A DNA stretch of 64,000 bases, from NCBI GenBank assembly GCA_977017575.1, contig CDRNVI010000020.1, positions 434,001 to 498,000 of the forward strand, read 5' to 3'. Origin of the DNA: Paramoeba atlantica. Taxonomy: Eukaryota > Protista > Discosea. The notes under the pieces are model-generated. The model was not told the origin of the DNA and did not search any database. It was given only the letters and a program-made list of their open reading frames with translations. Positions within the stretch are counted from its first letter, which is position 1; each line of letters begins with the position of its first letter. Shown here piece by piece: positions 20,268 through 35,524 of this stretch. The translations under genes and the position numbers were made by a program.

Positions 20268-20699
20268 ATGGACGATCAAGTCGCAAAAACGCATATAAAG
20301 CAGAAAGATGCCGAGAGCTACAGCCGTCGTCGCGGAAAAGTATCTGGTTCATTTCCCCCAGAAATTGAACTTTCTCGATTTACAGAAGGTTTAAAGAACA
20401 TTAATCCAACGTGGAACTCATCAACTCCGGGTTGCATGTGGTCTGGAATTCAGTGTAAAGATTCGACTAGACCAGACGATGTACCGCACATTCAATGGCA
20501 GCGACTTCAACTTCAAGGAACCCCCGGTTGGAAATACATACCTCAGTCGTTGCAGCATCTAAATATGTTTGCCAATTTTTTAACGGGTGAACTTCCACTT
20601 GATTTTCTTCCACATAACCTGAAGTCTATATATCTAGGTTCAAACATGCACAGTGGTCCACTATGTACACATAATCTTCCTGGTGCACTGAGCGAAGCA
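20268..20699 (+). pseudogene. LRR-family gene (member 6) truncated by the SL-fragment/CRE-like insertion
   Basis: RRRGKVSGSFPPE, cap and 2-3 LRRs. Breaks at ...LSEA where paralogs continue YLWGN; remainder not found after the element. Confidence 0.85.
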
Positions 20700-20730
20700 T
20701 AAAGATACAGCTATAAAGATACAGTTTCTG
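20700..20730 (+). other. Spliced-leader exon fragments: taaagatacag plus ctataaagatacagtttctg (not a complete SL RNA gene)
   Basis: Matches the kinetoplastid SL exon pattern GCTAT...GATACAGTTTCTGTAC (T. cruzi SL exon AACTAACGCTATTATTGATACAGTTTCTGTACTATATTG, recalled from established knowledge). Confidence 0.8.
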
Positions 20731-20768
20731 TTTTTTTTTGTTCTTTTTTCCTCCTCACCGTTGCCCAG

Positions 20769-23700
20769 TTAGCGCACGCCCCGCCGGTACCAATTTCGTA
20801 CCGCGGCGTGCGCTATCTGGGCGTTCCCCTTTTGGATGGCTACCCCAATTGCCATGATGAAGTGGCTGAGGCAACCATTCTTTTCTCCGGTGGCCTTTCG
20901 AGCAACCAGTTTAAGAAACTGGAGGGTCTCGGGGCCGGGGACACCGTAAGTGGTGAAGGCCAGCGGGAAGAAGTCCATCTCCCTGGCCCCCGCCATTTCT
21001 TCGTGAGTACGCCTTTTGAGGCGTTCGGCCTGTCTCACGGTGAAGGAGGAGTCTGCTGCCTCCTTGTCCACATAAGACGGTGCCAGTGGGTTCACCACCG
21101 TCACGTCTACGAGGACGAGCTTCCGCCCCAAAAGGAAACAGATGTCCGGTCCCCGCCCGTTGTCGAACCTAGGTTCGACTAGGTCCGGGGAGAATCCGTA
21201 CTGGATCAGTAGGTTCCTGAAGGTTTCCTTAACCCCCTTATGGCGAGAGGCCTGAGTCTTGTTACGAACCTTTTTGCAATCCATGGCATGGACGTAGAAA
21301 TCCTCGTTTTTGAGGGCTGCGCCACACACACATTGGATCTCAGGTTCGGAGGTGGGGGCCACCATGTACCGGAGCCTAGCGGCGGTCTCCCATTCGGGAT
21401 CCCGCATGTAGTACTCCGGCCTGTTCGGCCACGCGTTCATCCACTTGGTGGAGTGGGTGTTCTGAATCTGTCGCATGCAGACCAGATGCGTGGCCGACGG
21501 TGCCTTGTCCATAGCCGCCGCCCCATAAGCACGTCGCTGCTCCCTGGCTGGGGTGCCAGGGGGTCGGCCTTGTAAGGCCTTGACGGCTTTGGCCTGCATG
21601 TCCTCCGCCTTGTCTTCGAAGGGGATGGTGCCCAGGAAGTCCGCCGTAAAAAGTTTGTTTGCGAACGGCGTCGTTCCTATTGCACCCATCCCCCCGATTA
21701 AGGTTTAGGAGCATGCGGTGATGGCCGCGTCTACCTGAAGGTTTGCCTTTTTGGTCACCCCCGGTTCATGCATACGAACTATGTAGTTCCACCGGGGGCT
21801 CCCGAATAGGCGAAGAAGGGGAAGGGCGCACTGTCTGGGTAAGTCCTTCAGCTTACCCAAGAAGTTTGTGACCTTGGGAACCTTCGATAGGACCTATCCC
21901 TCTTCAACTGCTTCCGTGGCGCCAATATACGCCCCCAGAAGCTTGAACCCCCCCGGAGCATGTTGCATCCTGCTCCCCGAGAAGACCGAGTACAAGTCCG
22001 GGTGGCGGGTAGCCACCATGCACTTGGCCGTGTTGACCTTTAAGCCCAAAAACTTGATCTCCGCTTCCATGGAGCCAAGGGCATTTACGCACACCCCGGG
22101 CTCCGCGTCTATGGTTATATCATCCAGATATGCCCATAGCTTTAGACAGCCAGAGTATTTAGCCGCCACGGCCGAGATGGCGCCCTGTATCCCTAAGGCA
22201 AAAAGGATGGGCGCCATCGGGTCCCCTTGTTTCACCCCCCGGGAGCTAGGGACGGCAATCCCCTCCCCCAGGTGGATCTTGCTAGGGGTCCCGTACCCGA
22301 AAAGGGAAATCCCGATCATAGGGAAAAGGTTCTGGTACCTTTTCAAGGCTCGGAAAATGGCCGCGCGGGAAATGCTGTTAAAAGCATTTTCCAGGTCGAC
22401 CGCCACGATCACCTCATCGGGTCTGTCGCGGAAGTGATCTCTCACTTCATACACGACTTGCTCGCATCCTTGAGTGTATTGGGCTCCGAATTGGAGGCCC
22501 TGAAACACAGCTGGGAGGTGGTCTCTGACCTGTTCAAGGGCTAGTAGATCCGCGAGCTTCAGGATGACCTCCCCCATGGCAATGGGCCTGTACGAGGAGT
22601 GATGTCCCACCGGGGCCCCAGGCTTGTTAAAGAGCTTGAGGTTGGCTCCCGCGAGGAAATCCCTCATCGTGGGAGGGAGGGAGTTCGTGAGGATCCCTTG
22701 GATGATCCAAGTGACCACGTCCCTCGGGTCATCCTCCTGGAGGATGGGGACCAGGAGTTCTTTGGTCCATCTGGACGGGCCTGGCGGTCTAAGCGGCGCA
22801 AGGCTAGTTGCCTTACGGACAACATCTGCCGCCGACGGGAGGGGTCCATGACTTTCCTTGTCATGGACGAACTTGGGGGACGAACTTGGGGGACCTCCCG
22901 TAGGGTGGAGGCGTTTCACCTGTTCCCCCGCTGTAGCCGGGTTTGCCGGCGGATCGAGGGGGGCTTCCAAGATTTTAGCCGCCCTCGAGAAAGCCCCCGC
23001 CCGGATCAGCTCGGTAACCCGTTTGATAACAGAACGGGGGAAACTGTTGGTGAGGAGGGGAGTTGGAGCGATGGATTCCGACCCCTCTAGGTGAGCCCGT
23101 TTCCGTAACTCCCTCGCCAACTACCTCTGGGACAGCTTGTCCTCGGGGAAAAACAGGAACCGTTTAACCCCGAGAAGAAGATCCCAGGCGATTTTGGTCT
23201 TCCCTTCCTGCGACTTCCCCAAGAAGTCGCTACAGATAGACTTAATGTAGTCTTTCCACGCGGGGCATTGGATTGCGTACAGTTTACGTAGTGAGCCCCT
23301 ATCGAGGAGCTGGGCTAGGCTGTCCGGGTAAGGCGTGACGTTACCCTGCTCAGTGACCGCGCCTTGGGTATGAGGGGGCGTGGCGCTGGGGGCCATGTCG
23401 GGGGGGTCCGTCCCTGCGCGGTGGGAGTACGGAGGCGGAGAATGGGAGGAAGATGCATGGAAAGGAGGGCGTTGCGGTGAGGTCACAGCCTCGATTCCTT
23501 CCATGATAGTTCCTTCCCTGCTGGGGGAAGGGGTGTCGGGCTCCTGGAGGAGGGCACTCGGAGTCTCGCTCGGTGCCTGCCGGGGCTGGGGGGCGGATGA
23601 GGTCAGCGACTCTCGGTTCTTGTGTCTGGGGCCAGGGTTTGCCCCGATGCATCCCCTGCGTAGATTGCATTTGACAACCCGGGCGGTCCATCCCGTTTCG

Positions 23701-23927
23701 CTGACTAGGGTTTCTGTAGGGAGGAAACACCATAGCACACCCTCCTCGTATTCACGAGGTTTCCAAGCTCCAGCCAGCACTGGGGGAATACCGAGAATCT
23801 CACTCAGACCGGCCGGGATGTTGTGGGCCGCCTGTAGTCCGGGGGCATTAATGAACCCGTGCATGGACCCATCGTACACCCAAATAACGGCCGCCTCGTT
23901 GTTACGGGGGTAGGGACAGGCTGACCG
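20769..23927 (-). pseudogene. pol ORF of the CRE-like element (RT plus REL endonuclease), one frame with three in-frame stops
   Basis: Track ORFs 23121-23879, 21894-23120 and 20769-21689 share one frame. Stops are TAG 23121-23123, TAG 21894-21896 and TAA 21705-21707. Confidence 0.85.
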
Positions 23928-25643
23928 CTACTCGTTGAGCGCGATCTAGGCCCTCCCGATCTGTGATAGGGGTGGTTTCGCCAGCACTGTCTTTGAGGAG
24001 GAGATTTTCCCCAGGGACCCCTAAAGTGTTCCCCACTGTGCCGAGGAAAGCTTGGAAAGAGGAGTCCGGGGGGCAGGGGATAGTGGCATATCCGGCTCGC
24101 TCCGGCCCGAGATCGAGTAGGATCTTGAAGGGTTCTGAAACAGAGTCGACCTGGGGATTGATTGGCGGTGCAGGTGTAGCCTGCGAGGGAATTAGCTTCG
24201 TCGCTATCCCAGGGAAAGGTGTGGGATGAGGGGGAGAACGAAAGGTGGGCTGGGGCCAGGGTGGGCCTCCAGCCATCGCACTCGCCTGTGCCCTTTGGAG
24301 GTGGGCCTCCATCGTGCAGAACTCATATAGAGCCATGAAGGAGGAGAAGCGATCGGCCTTGATCCTGAGGGCTTCCGGGGAGTGTTCCCGAAGCAGGACC
24401 CGTGACGCAGCCCTTAGGCGTTTCGGCCCGTGCACCTTGATGCGATGCGCCTGGAGGGAGACAATATGCGGCTGCGTAATGCCGCATTCGGAGCAAACCA
24501 GACACCCTTCATTAATGAGATAGATACGCTCCTCGATGGACTTGTGGGTGTCGTGCAGCGTCCAAACGGCTTCGAGTGTAAAGGTTTCTGTACCTTGTTG
24601 GTACATTTTGCTAGCCCTTCCTTTCTTTTCCCGGAAACGGGCATACATTTTCCTTTTAAATGCCCGTTTCCGGCTGACGGCTAGCAGGGACTGTCCCTCT
24701 TTGTCGTGGAAGTAGGGGACGTACTTCCGACTTTTCACCCCTCCCCGGCTCACTCCTTGAGTGAGTTTTCTTCCCTCCCCGGCTTTCTTCTTCTCGCGCC
24801 TGTCTCTTCCCGGGAGCTATGCGCCATGGTGGCCTCCCTTGAGGACCACTGGGCGTGACTCTGCCTCGCATTATCGCGAGGCAGCGGTCGGTTGCAGTGC
24901 GCCCCTCCGGCTGCGTAAAGAGGTGGTGAGTTTCCTGGACCACCTCTACCGACTGGGACCGAGTCGGTTGCAGTACGCCCCTCCGGCTGCGTAAAGAGAG
25001 GGCGAGTTGCCTGGACCCCCTCTACCGACCGAGTCCGTGTCGAACCCCCTTTGGCGACATCCATTGTGGGCGGATTATGTGCCGATGATATCGGCCGTCG
25101 CATTAAGAGGATTATCTCTGCGCCAAAGAGCGCATGATAAACAAACCGACGTTCACGGGCCTCTTTCTCCATCATTGATGTTACGTCGTGTTCGGCGCTG
25201 AGGGTCACAGCCAGCCATAAGGTGACTGCGCATCTTCCTGTCTCCGCGGAAAAGCGATTTGAGCCGGTTCGGGCAGGAAGGAGCTTGAGGCGGACAGCGT
25301 CCATGGATTTGAACTGCTGTGCCATTGTGGGTAGGGATAACGACCGCTCACCGGGCGGCGGGCCGTCGCTGTCCATTTCGTCTCGGGCCACAGTGTCACT
25401 ACCGCCCATGCGGGTGACGGTGGAGAAGGGCTTAGAGGAGAGGTTAGCCGGGGGGAAAGGTGCAAAGGAGACGGTTGACGCTTTCTTCAGTATCGGAGCA
25501 GGAGCATTCGCCTGAGGGGTGCGAGCTCTGTTCCGGGAGCGGCTCCGAGGAGAGATGGAACGTGGGGGTCTTCGGGTTACCGACCGGTGTCGAGAGGACC
25601 TAGGAGAAGAAGCAGAGAGGGGAGGAGGGATCCCGGGAGTCAT
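23902..25643 (-). pseudogene. ORF1-like region of the CRE-like element (Arg/Ser-rich N-terminus, about 77-bp tandem duplication, CCHH zinc finger)
   Basis: Duplicated gtcggttgcagt(g/a)cgcccctccggctgcgtaaagag units at about 24887 and 24964. Frameshifts inferred by comparison with the copy at 34793-35350. Confidence 0.7.
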
Positions 25644-25762
25644 TTTTCGAACTGCCTTTTGATTTTAACGTATACTGGTTGGAGGATTAAAAAATATTAC
25701 ACGCGCTGGAACATTCGTTTATTGTTTTTATGAATCTATAAAACTTTAAACTGTTTTTTTAG

Positions 25763-26839
25763 ATGAATCTTCCCCTTCCCTTTAACAGTAGTGTCGCCCT
25801 GGAACGTGAGTTTCGAAACCTACCACCGACCAAAGCCAACGTACACGCAGCCCTTCTCCACCTCGAGGACCTCTGTCTGCAAGGTCACACCCATGCTGTA
25901 CTCCAGACGCTCTCCGGTCTCCTACGACGACCTTCTCGGCCCCCACCTGAGTTTACTCTTCCCTCAAACTGGTTCGGTTGGTGTCTCGTCGATGGTGTTC
26001 TCCGTTCACCATGGCTCCAAACCCTTTCCGAGACGTCTTCCCGGGAAACAGCTCCCCTACCCCTACCCCACGACATGAGGCTCCAAGCTAATCAAACCCT
26101 GCACCACGGGCTCCATGAGCTTCTCCCGGTTCGACTCTACGAGACGCTCACAGCGTTGCTTTCGAGTTTGCCGCTTTCTGGAACACAAAAAGAAACAGCC
26201 ATTTTTTCACCACACTCTCTCTTATTACTTTGTCTTCTCCCTTTTATGGATTTACTCCGTGCGTGGTGGAGTGATGGGATTCTCCCCGGTGAGGTCCGCT
26301 CAAGGCTCTCCGAGGTGTTCCGACAGTGTCTTACGGAGGTGACAAAGAAGACATTGAAACCCTTACAGCAACAACAGCAGCAAGAGAAACTGGAAAAGAC
26401 AGGAGCGGAATCCTCTTCTGTCGTCCGGATAGTGTACGCAAACGAAATCTCCAGGGAGGGGGAAGCGGCTTCCTCGTCAGGGTCAGCCCAGGAGGGAAGA
26501 AAGGGGGACAAATTGACAGACCCGATAAATTTGGATAATTTACTGTCCGAAGGTACGGGAAATACACATTCCCACCCTCTGGAGAAGTTACATGCGACCC
26601 TTTCGCATTTAAACGACAGCCGTGGGATACGATGTTACCACTGTGGAATGCCGTTCCAGAGTGCCTCTGCTCGTGACCGCCATGGGCGGTGTCATTTTGA
26701 GTATCGCGTCTCGGAGCGGAATTATTTCCGTTCTTACAGCCGTACCCCCACACAGTGGATCGAGTCCACCCCAGATGTAGAAAACGGGACCTACGTGTCC
26801 GCACTGCAGACCCCAAGTGGGATGTATCACTTGCGGTGA
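25763..26839 (+). CDS. Pcf11-like protein (CID-like N-terminus plus C2H2 zinc finger)
   Basis: WCLVDGVLRS resembles the CID YLIDSIVKN helix. CYHCGMPF...HGRCHF...RSYSRTPTQWI resembles the Pcf11 zinc finger and following SRxW motif. Confidence 0.55.
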   Translation: MNLPLPFNSSVALEREFRNLPPTKANVHAALLHLEDLCLQGHTHAVLQTLSGLLRRPSRPPPEFTLPSNWFGWCLVDGVLRSPWLQTLSETSSRETAPLPLPHDMRLQANQTLHHGLHELLPVRLYETLTALLSSLPLSGTQKETAIFSPHSLLLLCLLPFMDLLRAWWSDGILPGEVRSRLSEVFRQCLTEVTKKTLKPLQQQQQQEKLEKTGAESSSVVRIVYANEISREGEAASSSGSAQEGRKGDKLTDPINLDNLLSEGTGNTHSHPLEKLHATLSHLNDSRGIRCYHCGMPFQSASARDRHGRCHFEYRVSERNYFRSYSRTPTQWIESTPDVENGTYVSALQTPSGMYHLR

Positions 26840-27072
26840 AATGAAAGACTCGGGGCTTCGTAGAAAGCACTTAGAGTGGGTTGATTGCAAAGGAAAACGT
26901 GGAATTCAACATGCATGCATTTTCAATTGTCTAGCTGATGCATATTTCTTTTGATTCGAAAACATTGTTAAACGAATACATTTGACAACATGTCTGTTTG
27001 TTTCGCAACAAGATGATTTTTAAAGTACTTAAGGTGCGCGAATATGAATCAATCGTTTCTTTTGTAAAACCA

Positions 27073-27924
27073 ATGTCTGACGATCACAGAATGACACAGT
27101 GCCCAGGTTCAAAGCACCCAAAGTGCAGTCAGAGCTACAATGCTCGCCGAGGAAAAGTGTCCAGTTCGCTTCTCCCTCCGGAAATCGAACTGTCTCGATT
27201 TGTAGCAGATTTTAAGAATACAGATCCATCCTGGAGCTCATCAACCCCGGCTTGCAAGTGGTCGGGAATTATTTGTCTAGATTCGACGAGACCAGAGGAA
27301 GTAACAAATATGGAATGGCACCAGTATTCACTTCGAGGAACTCCGAATTGGAAGTACATACCCCATTCGGTTCTGGATTTGAATATGTTCGAAAACTTTT
27401 TGACTGGTGAACTACCTCTTGATGTCCTTCCACTCGAGCTAAAGTTTCTATATCTGGGTTCAAACCAGCTCAACGGCTCCTTACCTACACAAGATCTGCC
27501 TAGTTCTCTAATCGAGGCATATTTATGGGGAAATTCATTTTCCAGCACGCTTGATTTGAGCATTCTTCCTATAACTCTCACTGAGTTTTCGGTTGCTCAC
27601 AACAAATTCTTTGGTTCTCTTAATCTGACTACATTGCCACGCTCAATGACAGAGCTCCAGTTAGAAAACAATGCATTTACGGGAAGTATTGATTTAGGCA
27701 GCCTCCCCCCTTCTATGAACGATCTCAATATAAATATCAATCGTATTGAACATGTATCGGGACTCAACTCATTACCGTTAACGTTACGAGAACTAAATGT
27801 TACCAATAACAACGTACTCACCGGAGAATTTGATAAAGTATTATTTCCTCCTCTCCTTAATTTTGTGTTCGATGAGACTCTTTTGAAGGAAATAGAAAGT
27901 GCGCTGGTGACTGTACACAAGTGA
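27073..27924 (+). CDS. Short LRR protein (member 7)
   Basis: RRGKVSSSLLPPE, PACKWSGIIC, about 8 LRRs. ATG 27073 (MSDDH) aligns with paralog starts. Confidence 0.9.
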   Translation: MSDDHRMTQCPGSKHPKCSQSYNARRGKVSSSLLPPEIELSRFVADFKNTDPSWSSSTPACKWSGIICLDSTRPEEVTNMEWHQYSLRGTPNWKYIPHSVLDLNMFENFLTGELPLDVLPLELKFLYLGSNQLNGSLPTQDLPSSLIEAYLWGNSFSSTLDLSILPITLTEFSVAHNKFFGSLNLTTLPRSMTELQLENNAFTGSIDLGSLPPSMNDLNININRIEHVSGLNSLPLTLRELNVTNNNVLTGEFDKVLFPPLLNFVFDETLLKEIESALVTVHK

Positions 27925-34124: not shown

Positions 34125-35524
34125 ATGGCAGACAATAAAGCGGAAGCAAGAAATTTGAGTCAAACAAATGTACAGTGTTCTAAAGGATACATTAGTCGTC
34201 GAGGAAAAGTGCTTGGAAGTCTTTTTCCTCCGGAAATCGAACTTTCTCGATTTGCAGCTGGCTTAAAGAATACAGATCCATCATGGAGCTCGTCAACCTC
34301 AGCTTGCATGTGGTCTGGGATTCAGTGTAAAGGTTCGAAAAGACCAGAAGAAGTAACAAATATTGAATGGCAAAGGTGGAGAGTTCGAGGAGCTCCAAAT
34401 TGGAAGTACATGCCCCAATCGGTTCTGGATCTGAATACTTTTGAAAACTTTTTGACCGGTGAACTACCCCTTGATGTCCTTCCACGTGAACTAAAATTTC
34501 TATATCTGGCTGCAAACCAGTTCAATGGTTCCTTAGCTACACAACATCTGCCTAGTTCTCTAATGGAGGCATATTTATGGGGAAATTCATTTTCCAGCAC
34601 GCTTGATTTGAGCATTCTGCCGCTCAATCTCACAGAGTTTTCGGTTTCTCAGAACGAACTCTTTGGTTCTCTTAATCTTTGCTCACTACCACACTCGATG
34701 ACAGAGCTCATGTTGAGTCAGAATGAATTTACTGGTCGCATTGATTTAAGTCGGCTTCCTCCTTCCATGGCAGTGAACTGTATAAAGATACAGTTTCTGT
34801 ACCTTGTTGGTACATTTTGCTAGCCCTTCCTTTCTTTTCCCGGAAACGGCATACATTTTCCTTTTAAATGCCCGTTTCCGGCTGACGGCTAGCAGGGACT
34901 GTCCCTCTTGTCGTGGAAGTAGGGGACGTACCTCCGACTTTTCACCCCTCCCCGGCTCACTCCTTGAGTGAGTTTTCTTCCCTCCCCGGCTTTCTTCTTC
35001 TCGCGCCTGTCTCTTCCCGGGAGCTATGCGCCATGGTGGCCTCCCTTGAGGACCACTGGGCGTGACTCTGCCTCGCATAATCGCGAGGCAGCGGTCGGTT
35101 GCAGTGCGCCCCTCCGGCTGCGTAAAGAGGTGGTGAGTTGCCTGGACCACCTCTACCGACTGGGACCGAGTCGGTTGCAGTACGCCCCTCCGGCTGCGTA
35201 AAGAGAGGGCGAGTTGCCTGGACCCCCTCTACCGACCGAGTCCGTGTCGAACCCCCTTTGGCGACATCCGTTGTGGGCAGATTATGTGCCGATGATATCG
35301 GCCGTCGCATTAAGGGGATTATCTCTGCGCCAAAGAGCGCATGATAAACAACGTTAAACAACAATCGACTTGAGCACATAACAGGGTTAGATTCACTGCC
35401 AACAAGGTTGGTGCGGCTAAGTGTTGCAGAAAACAAGGAGCTTATGGGAGAGTTTAATAAAAATTTATTTACTAGGTGGTTGAGCGAATTTATTTTTCAT
35501 ATGACTCTTTTGAAACAATTGTAA
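34125..35524 (+). pseudogene. LRR-family gene (member 9) split by a 570-bp insertion
   Basis: The 5' part ends ...gaactg (34780). Coding resumes at 35351 as TLNNNRLEHITGLDSLP...MTLLKQL* (stop 35522-35524), matching the C-terminus of paralog 33049. Confidence 0.88.
34781..35350. mobile_element. Chimeric insert: SL-exon fragment fused to an internal piece (about 24584-25143) of the CRE-like element
   Basis: tataaagatacagtttctgt followed by sequence nearly identical to 24592-25143, differing by a few substitutions and 1-nt indels. No target-site duplication. Confidence 0.9.

Follow-up and report, generated by a model that had tools for sequence, protein, structure and literature searches.

At one point in the window (the whole 64,000-nucleotide stretch of DNA analysed), spliced leader (SL) sequence lies between an interrupted LRR gene and the poly(A) end of a retroelement, here called E, that points the opposite way. 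A preliminary description of this locus raised the question of whether retrotransposons specific for SL genes have a previously undescribed way out of their arrays. The evidence speaks against this. Most likely, the SL piece derives from a different element, one with an SL head, that had inserted at an LRR-gene hot spot, and it is not evidence of array escape. We assign a probability of roughly 0.6 to our reading as a whole, in which an SL-sense 3′ end at the LRR hot spot primed the copying of E RNA and a young SINE arrived later. The parts of the locus, and one SINE used for comparison, are these:

20268..20699, plus strand: 5′ part of the truncated LRR gene, cut after ...HNLPGALSEA
20700..20710, plus strand: first, abortive SL head piece TAAAGATACAG, which together with the A at 20699 reads ATAAAGATACAG
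20711..20712, plus strand: filler CT (CTT in the ENA assembly)
20713..20730, plus strand: second SL head piece ATAAAGATACAGTTTCTG, 18 nt, an exact match to the organism's SL
20731..20739, minus strand: poly(A) tail (A9) of E, seen as T9 on the plus strand; other E copies have A7-A10
20740..24583, minus strand: 3′ part of E (3′ UTR, C-terminal ORF, RT ORF, middle ORF and part of ORF1)
20769-21689, minus strand: C-terminal ORF of E, with a C-x-C-x12-H-x4-C (CCHC) knuckle and a PD-x12-D motif, both read directly
21894-23120, minus strand: RT ORF of E (RVT_1, 1.5e-19)
23121-23879, minus strand: middle ORF of E
within 20740..24583, minus strand: ORF1 part of E, with a C2H2 finger
24584..25144, plus strand: SINE-B, an SL-headed non-coding retroposon inside E and antisense to it, 561 bp (family ~575 bp)
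25145..25640, minus strand: 5′ part of E (start of ORF1); a sister copy on contig C26 has it joined directly, with the frame kept, to the sequence from 24583 downward
25641..26839, plus strand: right flank, an AT-rich spacer and an unrelated 358-aa ORF (25763-26839)
34773..35351, plus strand: comparison SINE, intact and with its ATAAAG head complete, which occupies the same repeat phase of a paralogous LRR gene

The junction reads as it was first described. LRR coding sequence ending ...gaagca is followed by TAAAGATACAG, CT, the longer SL piece, T9 and, past T9, the reverse-complemented 3′ UTR of E on the minus strand. The same junction is present in the ENA assembly ERZ24900291 (ctg3810l), which is 99.8% identical over 15 kb and has one extra T in the filler. 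The junction is not peculiar to one assembly, though the two may share underlying reads. Three further statements of the preliminary description are borne out: the SL piece is opposite in orientation to E, it carries a tandem stutter duplication (11 nt, CT, 18 nt), and the locus is not an SL array, as this copy sits in an LRR gene. The likeness to SL is not a matter of chance, since the window contains two instances of the 13-mer GATACAGTTTCTG, where 0.09 would be expected.

The LRR gene itself is incomplete. Its reading frame (20268-20702) ends ...HNLPGALSEA, and the TAA stop is contributed by the first SL head piece. By tblastn, 20304-20699 corresponds to residues 42-174 of a 308-aa paralogue at 26998-27924 without continuing further, and the remainder of the gene (paralogue residues 175-308) is absent from the window. 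Neither this remainder nor SL sequence was found in the right flank (25641-26839). The 358-aa ORF there has a C-x2-C...H-x4-H-like motif near its C-terminus and identical coding in the ENA assembly; it matches no Pfam family and is not repeated elsewhere in the window. The assembly holds no empty or alternative allele of the disrupted gene, the paralogues being at most 75% identical. From 6253 to 51594 the window is a cluster of at least 10 LRR paralogues (28-100% identity, tblastn), two of which are disrupted by SL-headed elements. Elsewhere, twin insertions with identical flanks occur on different contigs (L033/L034, L037/L040, L048/L049, L050/L053, L052/L054, L056/L057 and L058/L059), which suggests either that both haplotypes were assembled for parts of the genome or that there were recent segmental duplications. 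The LRR locus of the window has no such twin.

To interpret the fragment, it is necessary to know where SL sequence normally occurs in this genome. The organism's SL, ...AACGATAAAGATACAGTTTCTGTACCTTGTTG, was deduced from ~760 dispersed genomic copies and from regular arrays, and the 18-mer ATAAAGATACAGTTTCTG is an exact part of it. The original identification of the fragment as SL holds for this 18-mer; for the 20-mer it fails at one base (ct versus cg before ATAAAG). A 16-mer derived from the fragment has 760 matches, on both strands, in the 45.7-Mb genome, and at 30 sampled places it belongs to ...(A)n-(T)CTTTAACGATAAAGATACAGTTTCTGTACCTTGTTG. At the sampled loci the usual arrangement is poly(A), SL, 5′ UTR and ATG, in that order. 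Such a layout is that of trans-spliced and polyadenylated RNAs copied into DNA and linked head to tail. Most SL sequence in this genome is the 5′ head, itself retro-copied, of mRNA retrocopies, LINEs or a ~575-bp SINE. A full-text search of the literature found no paper on this SL string.

Full SL exons followed by GTA also recur in regular arrays on C97 (348-28637), C107 (1828-22430), C11 (855-6724) and C74 (104160-121526), with a period of ~2.56 kb on C97 and C107. These arrays are probably the SL RNA genes. The spacing of the C74 array leaps from 2.7 kb to ~7.3 kb, two times, which could reflect 4.6-kb insertions. A genome-wide search for a recurrent antisense poly(A)-in-SL route found an SL head cut short by a T8 run at only 2 sites, this locus and C9:429975, neither of which lies at putative array coordinates. 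The C9 site (429975-429994) reads ATAAAGATACAG followed by T8 and may be a second antisense poly(A) junction; its break point is unlike that of the window junction. At C2:553054-553107 (L028-L030) a head-to-head palindrome runs antisense SL directly into sense SL, and looks as if two retrocopies had met at their 5′ ends or a cDNA had snapped back.

E spans ~25640 to 20731 on the minus strand. It encodes a reverse transcriptase of non-LTR type, whose PDB matches are R2 (3.9e-10, the best solved) and L1 ORF2 (2.7e-8). The C-terminal ORF had no Pfam or PDB sequence match, and an AF2 model of it built without an alignment reached a pLDDT of 36; in the four E ORFs searched at E<=0.01, there was no match to the AP-endonuclease family. 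The order of domains appears to be that of RLE-type LINEs, R2 and CRE included, with a candidate restriction-like endonuclease (RLE) assigned by motif reading alone. A search for homologues of E returned only unnamed proteins. Several stops and frameshifts mark the copy in the window as degenerate, and against its closest relative it shows 2.2% private substitutions.

The preliminary description took E to be specific for SL genes. Its family has 29 other 3′ ends in the genome, with mutually unrelated flanks; antisense SL follows none of them, and in one case a chain continues with the next retrocopy, whose full SL, in sense, comes after. Together with the rarity of SL heads ended by T8 and their absence from the array coordinates, these flanks identify E as dispersed, not SL-specific, in this genome. 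Nothing at this locus shows an escape from an array, and E has no array to leave. Several 5′-truncated relatives of E carry target duplications of 4-9 bp, and 5′ truncation is frequent. At L045 800-900 (C66 ~75290-75390), and also at L047, a complete antisense SL precedes a 5′-truncated relative of E, and is followed by a 10-nt piece of E, a filler, a second antisense SL piece and E again. These are 5′ junction stutters that involve antisense SL.

The statement that SL sequence lies on one side only proved incomplete. A second SL piece, GTTTCTGTACCTTGTTG at 24584-24600, is found 3.85 kb to the right of the junction in the same orientation, where it forms the head of the 561-bp SINE; another 544 bp follow, ending GATAAACAA. 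In the C26 sister copy of E (L064, L032), the sequence of window positions 25146-25287 (on to ~25640) is joined directly and in frame to that of 24583 downward. Thus, E is one element and the SINE was inserted inside it. The C26 copy has an antisense SINE of its own, placed differently. The internal SINE departs from the family majority at 3 of 561 columns (0.5%); set against the private substitutions and many stops of E, this makes the SINE young and E older.

Short, non-coding, high in copy number, fixed at both ends and starting with SL sequence, this element has the features of a SINE. Its family comprises more than 40 copies of 561-575 bp, 92-99% identical and sharing a 3′ end, and has no match among Rfam families. 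Nearly all copies start ATAAAGATACAGTTTCTGTACCTTGTTG regardless of their flank (at least 46 exact heads). Heads of this SINE/LINE type are intact across the point between ACAG and TTTCTG in 46 of 47 cases genome-wide, and the sole cut one is the copy inside E, which starts at GTTTCTGTACCTTGTTG without ATAAAGATACA. The missing ATAAAGATACA, plus a 7-nt overlap, is what sits at the poly(A) end of E, 3.85 kb away. At L089 (C41 ~425320), SL relics starting TTTCTGTACC stand two in a row beside a rearranged SINE, a recurrence of the break between ACAG and TTTCTG. A longer element, seen at L022 and as the second head of L082, is 91% identical to the SINE over its first 274 bp, truncated SL head included, and then diverges. 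It is probably the LINE partner, with the SINE derived from its 5′ end, and both examples lie at LRR hot spots. The GT that follows TTG prompted the idea that the SINE is the remainder of an SL RNA gene; this was rejected, as the array copies differ downstream and Rfam offers no match. The sequence past TTG in the SINE (GTACATTTTGC...) occurs in dispersed copies only, not at the array coordinates of C97, C107, C11 and C74, and neither the fragment nor the SINE consists of a full exon followed by array intron sequence.

The position of the fragment in the LRR gene is also characteristic. In a sample of ~21 independent truncated SINE or LINE heads, 5 lie in LRR coding sequence, and those 5 junctions fall 23-27 nt past the first base of the LP codons in LPxxLxxL. 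The window junction falls at 23-24 nt. At L082 two successive LRR repeats are both occupied, and at the comparison SINE (34773-35351) LRR sequence runs on at either side. At L071 (C23:200687-201300), a SINE sits at an LRR hot spot where another SL-headed copy was already present, and 12 bp of the LRR flank (agagaactttga) are duplicated, which indicates that the position of the plus-strand nick is re-used. The window fragment begins, two times, at the family-typical head start ATAAAG. Trans-splicing at an SL-internal AG was considered as the cause of this head start and rejected, as it does not account for the start point. The SL-headed copies L007, L010 and L025 likewise show an incomplete head and a short filler before the head begins again, and SINE 5′ junctions commonly carry duplicated upstream target (L064, L070, L086); the so-called slippage duplication is thus a recurrent junction type here. 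More generally, multi-template chains and stutters are common in this genome.

From the observed sequence, the copy-number and flank statistics, the phase of the hot spot and the contiguity of E across the SINE, we infer a priming step, an order of events and a deletion. The source of the fragment would be the 5′ head of an SL-headed SINE or of its LINE partner, DNA copies of which begin ATAAAGATACAG..., and not SL-gene DNA. A plus-strand 3′ end in the LRR gene would have copied the head of an SL-headed cDNA two times, giving 11 nt, CT and 18 nt; alternatively, the SL-sense 3′ end may have been left by a resident SL-headed element. This end (...CAGTTTCTG-3′) would then have primed synthesis on the poly(A) tail of E RNA, which yields both the direct junction of SL to T9 and the opposite orientation of the two. 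If all this was one event, it would have been an aborted insertion whose second-strand primer switched to E RNA. If there were two, E would have undergone target-primed reverse transcription from a nick in the head of the resident element, the remainder of which disappeared. In both cases the LRR gene would have lost its 3′ half, in the process or later; the missing LRR residues 175-308 mean that target DNA was lost. The last step would be the entry of a young SINE copy into E. No remnant of the postulated SL-headed element was found past the 18 nt, and the fact that only 1 of 47 SINE heads is cut before GTTTCTG counts against this reading, under which it is a coincidence of roughly 1-2%.

Several other explanations must be weighed against priming by an SL-sense end at the hot spot. 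The preliminary description proposed that E normally sits antisense in SL genes, and that an SL-promoter-driven RNA composed of SL, T9 and antisense element was retro-copied here. Orientation alone favors this, and we give it next to no chance: it has no source copy, the other SL+T8 site (C9:429975) differing in break point and lying outside the arrays; the SL, present in duplicate, is missing the bases that precede ATAAAG; and on the far side, near 25640, there is neither the poly(A) that such a copy needs nor any other 3′ end. Its second proposal was that the cut end of an SL RNA gene primed an SL-targeting element and that an unrelated break in the LRR gene took up the tagged cDNA. The core of this idea survives, because priming by an SL-sense DNA 3′ end fits the passage of ...CAGTTTCTG directly into T9. 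The cut SL-gene end and the unrelated break do not. There are two starts at ATAAAG, with neither SL bases nor gene sequence upstream of them; the fragment lies at the phase of the LRR hot spot; the E family does not target SL genes; and putative array coordinates hold no SL+T8 junction. Given the ATAAAG head start and the hot-spot site, the SL piece is retro-copied head material in situ, not a cut SL-gene end, and the second proposal keeps a small chance. Simple nesting, the first model, has a 5′-truncated E (20731-24583) enter the head of a SINE already in place and duplicate 7 bp of target, GTTTCTG. This direct repeat is indeed found at 20724-20730 and 24584-24590, removal of the block gives back a canonical SINE head, and 5′ truncation with short target duplications of 4-9 bp is known from E-family members. 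However, the supposed insert amounts to only a portion of E. The 5′ part of the same element is found in the 496 bp past the SINE (25145-25640), C26 has those 496 bp joined, in frame and with nothing between, to the sequence that lies left of the SINE in the window, and a truncation point would coincide by chance with the end of an unrelated fragment only about once in 4000. Unless the C26 arrangement is an assembly error, the sister copy refutes simple nesting, to which we leave a very slight probability.

What simple nesting cannot explain is the interleaved mosaic at this locus, where the plus strand consists of two templates, each resumed where it was left. A single-template explanation that links the two SL pieces, deriving both from one SINE head, deals with this directly, and comes in two versions. 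In one, an E transcript that contained a complete antisense SINE was copied at the LRR break: two abortive starts on the internal antisense-SL stretch were followed by a jump to the poly(A) tail and by copying of E as far as the SINE, and a gap made by RNase H was finally bridged by an end-to-end template jump. In the other, a SINE was inserting into a resident E, and the 3′ end of its cDNA was also copied at the boundary of LRR and T9 by a second plus-strand 3′ end. The outcome would be a mosaic of head (start to TTTCTG), 3′ part of E, SINE with its head from GTTTCTG on, and 5′ part of E. Such a linked origin would account for the unique head cut (1 of 47), for the missing bases and for the 7-nt overlap at the tail of E, while E stays contiguous across the SINE; it is in keeping with the multi-template chains and stutters of this genome and with a plus-strand nick at the hot spot that can be re-used (L071). 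Against this, no E copy in the assembly carries the SINE at this point and so qualifies as the source, all other hits stopping at the SINE ends. E has about four times the apparent age of the SINE, a poor match for the composite-RNA version, and the two-primer version requires action over 3.85 kb as well as an E tail exactly at the hot-spot nick. Several steps are without direct precedent. We consider a linked origin unlikely. It is also doubtful, although conceivable, that the locus is the in vivo footprint of one reverse transcriptase alternating between two templates at an LRR hot-spot break. Its path, on this tentative account, may have led from two antisense-SL (SINE head) starts to the LINE poly(A), from there to the SINE within 7 nt, and back to the LINE where it had been left.

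It is useful to contrast these junctions with known systems. The CRE clade of trypanosomatid non-LTR retrotransposons (CRE1, CRE2, SLACS, CZAR) is site-specific (PMC12278014). In contrast, the E family is dispersed among unrelated flanks and does not occupy a fixed SL RNA gene position in arrays. It touches SL just once, in antisense, at a different SL position and not within an SL gene. E resembles R2, the best solved match of its RT, or non-site-specific R2-like LINEs of the RLE type. The junctions described here, with their non-templated fillers, short duplications of upstream target and chains suggestive of template jumping, are also R2-like; non-templated addition, target duplication and template jumping are activities described for the R2 RT. 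Unlike R2, E has no rDNA target, and here the 3′ end of SL-sense DNA, itself retro-copied, seems to have acted as primer. When L1 acts at DNA breaks, a DNA 3′ end primes the cDNA and target DNA is lost. In chimeric retrocopies such as U6/L1, template switching joins two templates in one strand. The parts of those chimeras have the same sense, whereas the SL piece and E are of opposite sense and two templates are interleaved. By extrapolation from trypanosomatids, the cells here probably lack classical end joining. Dinoflagellate relict-SL retrogenes are DNA copies of trans-spliced RNAs that keep the 5′ SL (PMC6050394, PMC5585692). There as here, SL marks retro-copied sequence; the host here differs in being of kinetoplastid type, and the tagged copies include LINEs and a SINE. 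Our literature search found no paper on SL-headed retroelements in kinetoplastids.

For this genome, SL sequence in the DNA is a mark of retro-copied RNA, not of SL genes. The locus offers a well-marked compound junction, in which an SL-sense end would have primed on an unrelated poly(A) tail at a hot spot whose use disrupts LRR genes. If the reading with alternating templates were true, the locus would be a base-by-base record of break repair templated by RNA and carried out by an R2-like enzyme. Overall, the locus is relevant to 5′ junction formation and template switching by R2-like enzymes.
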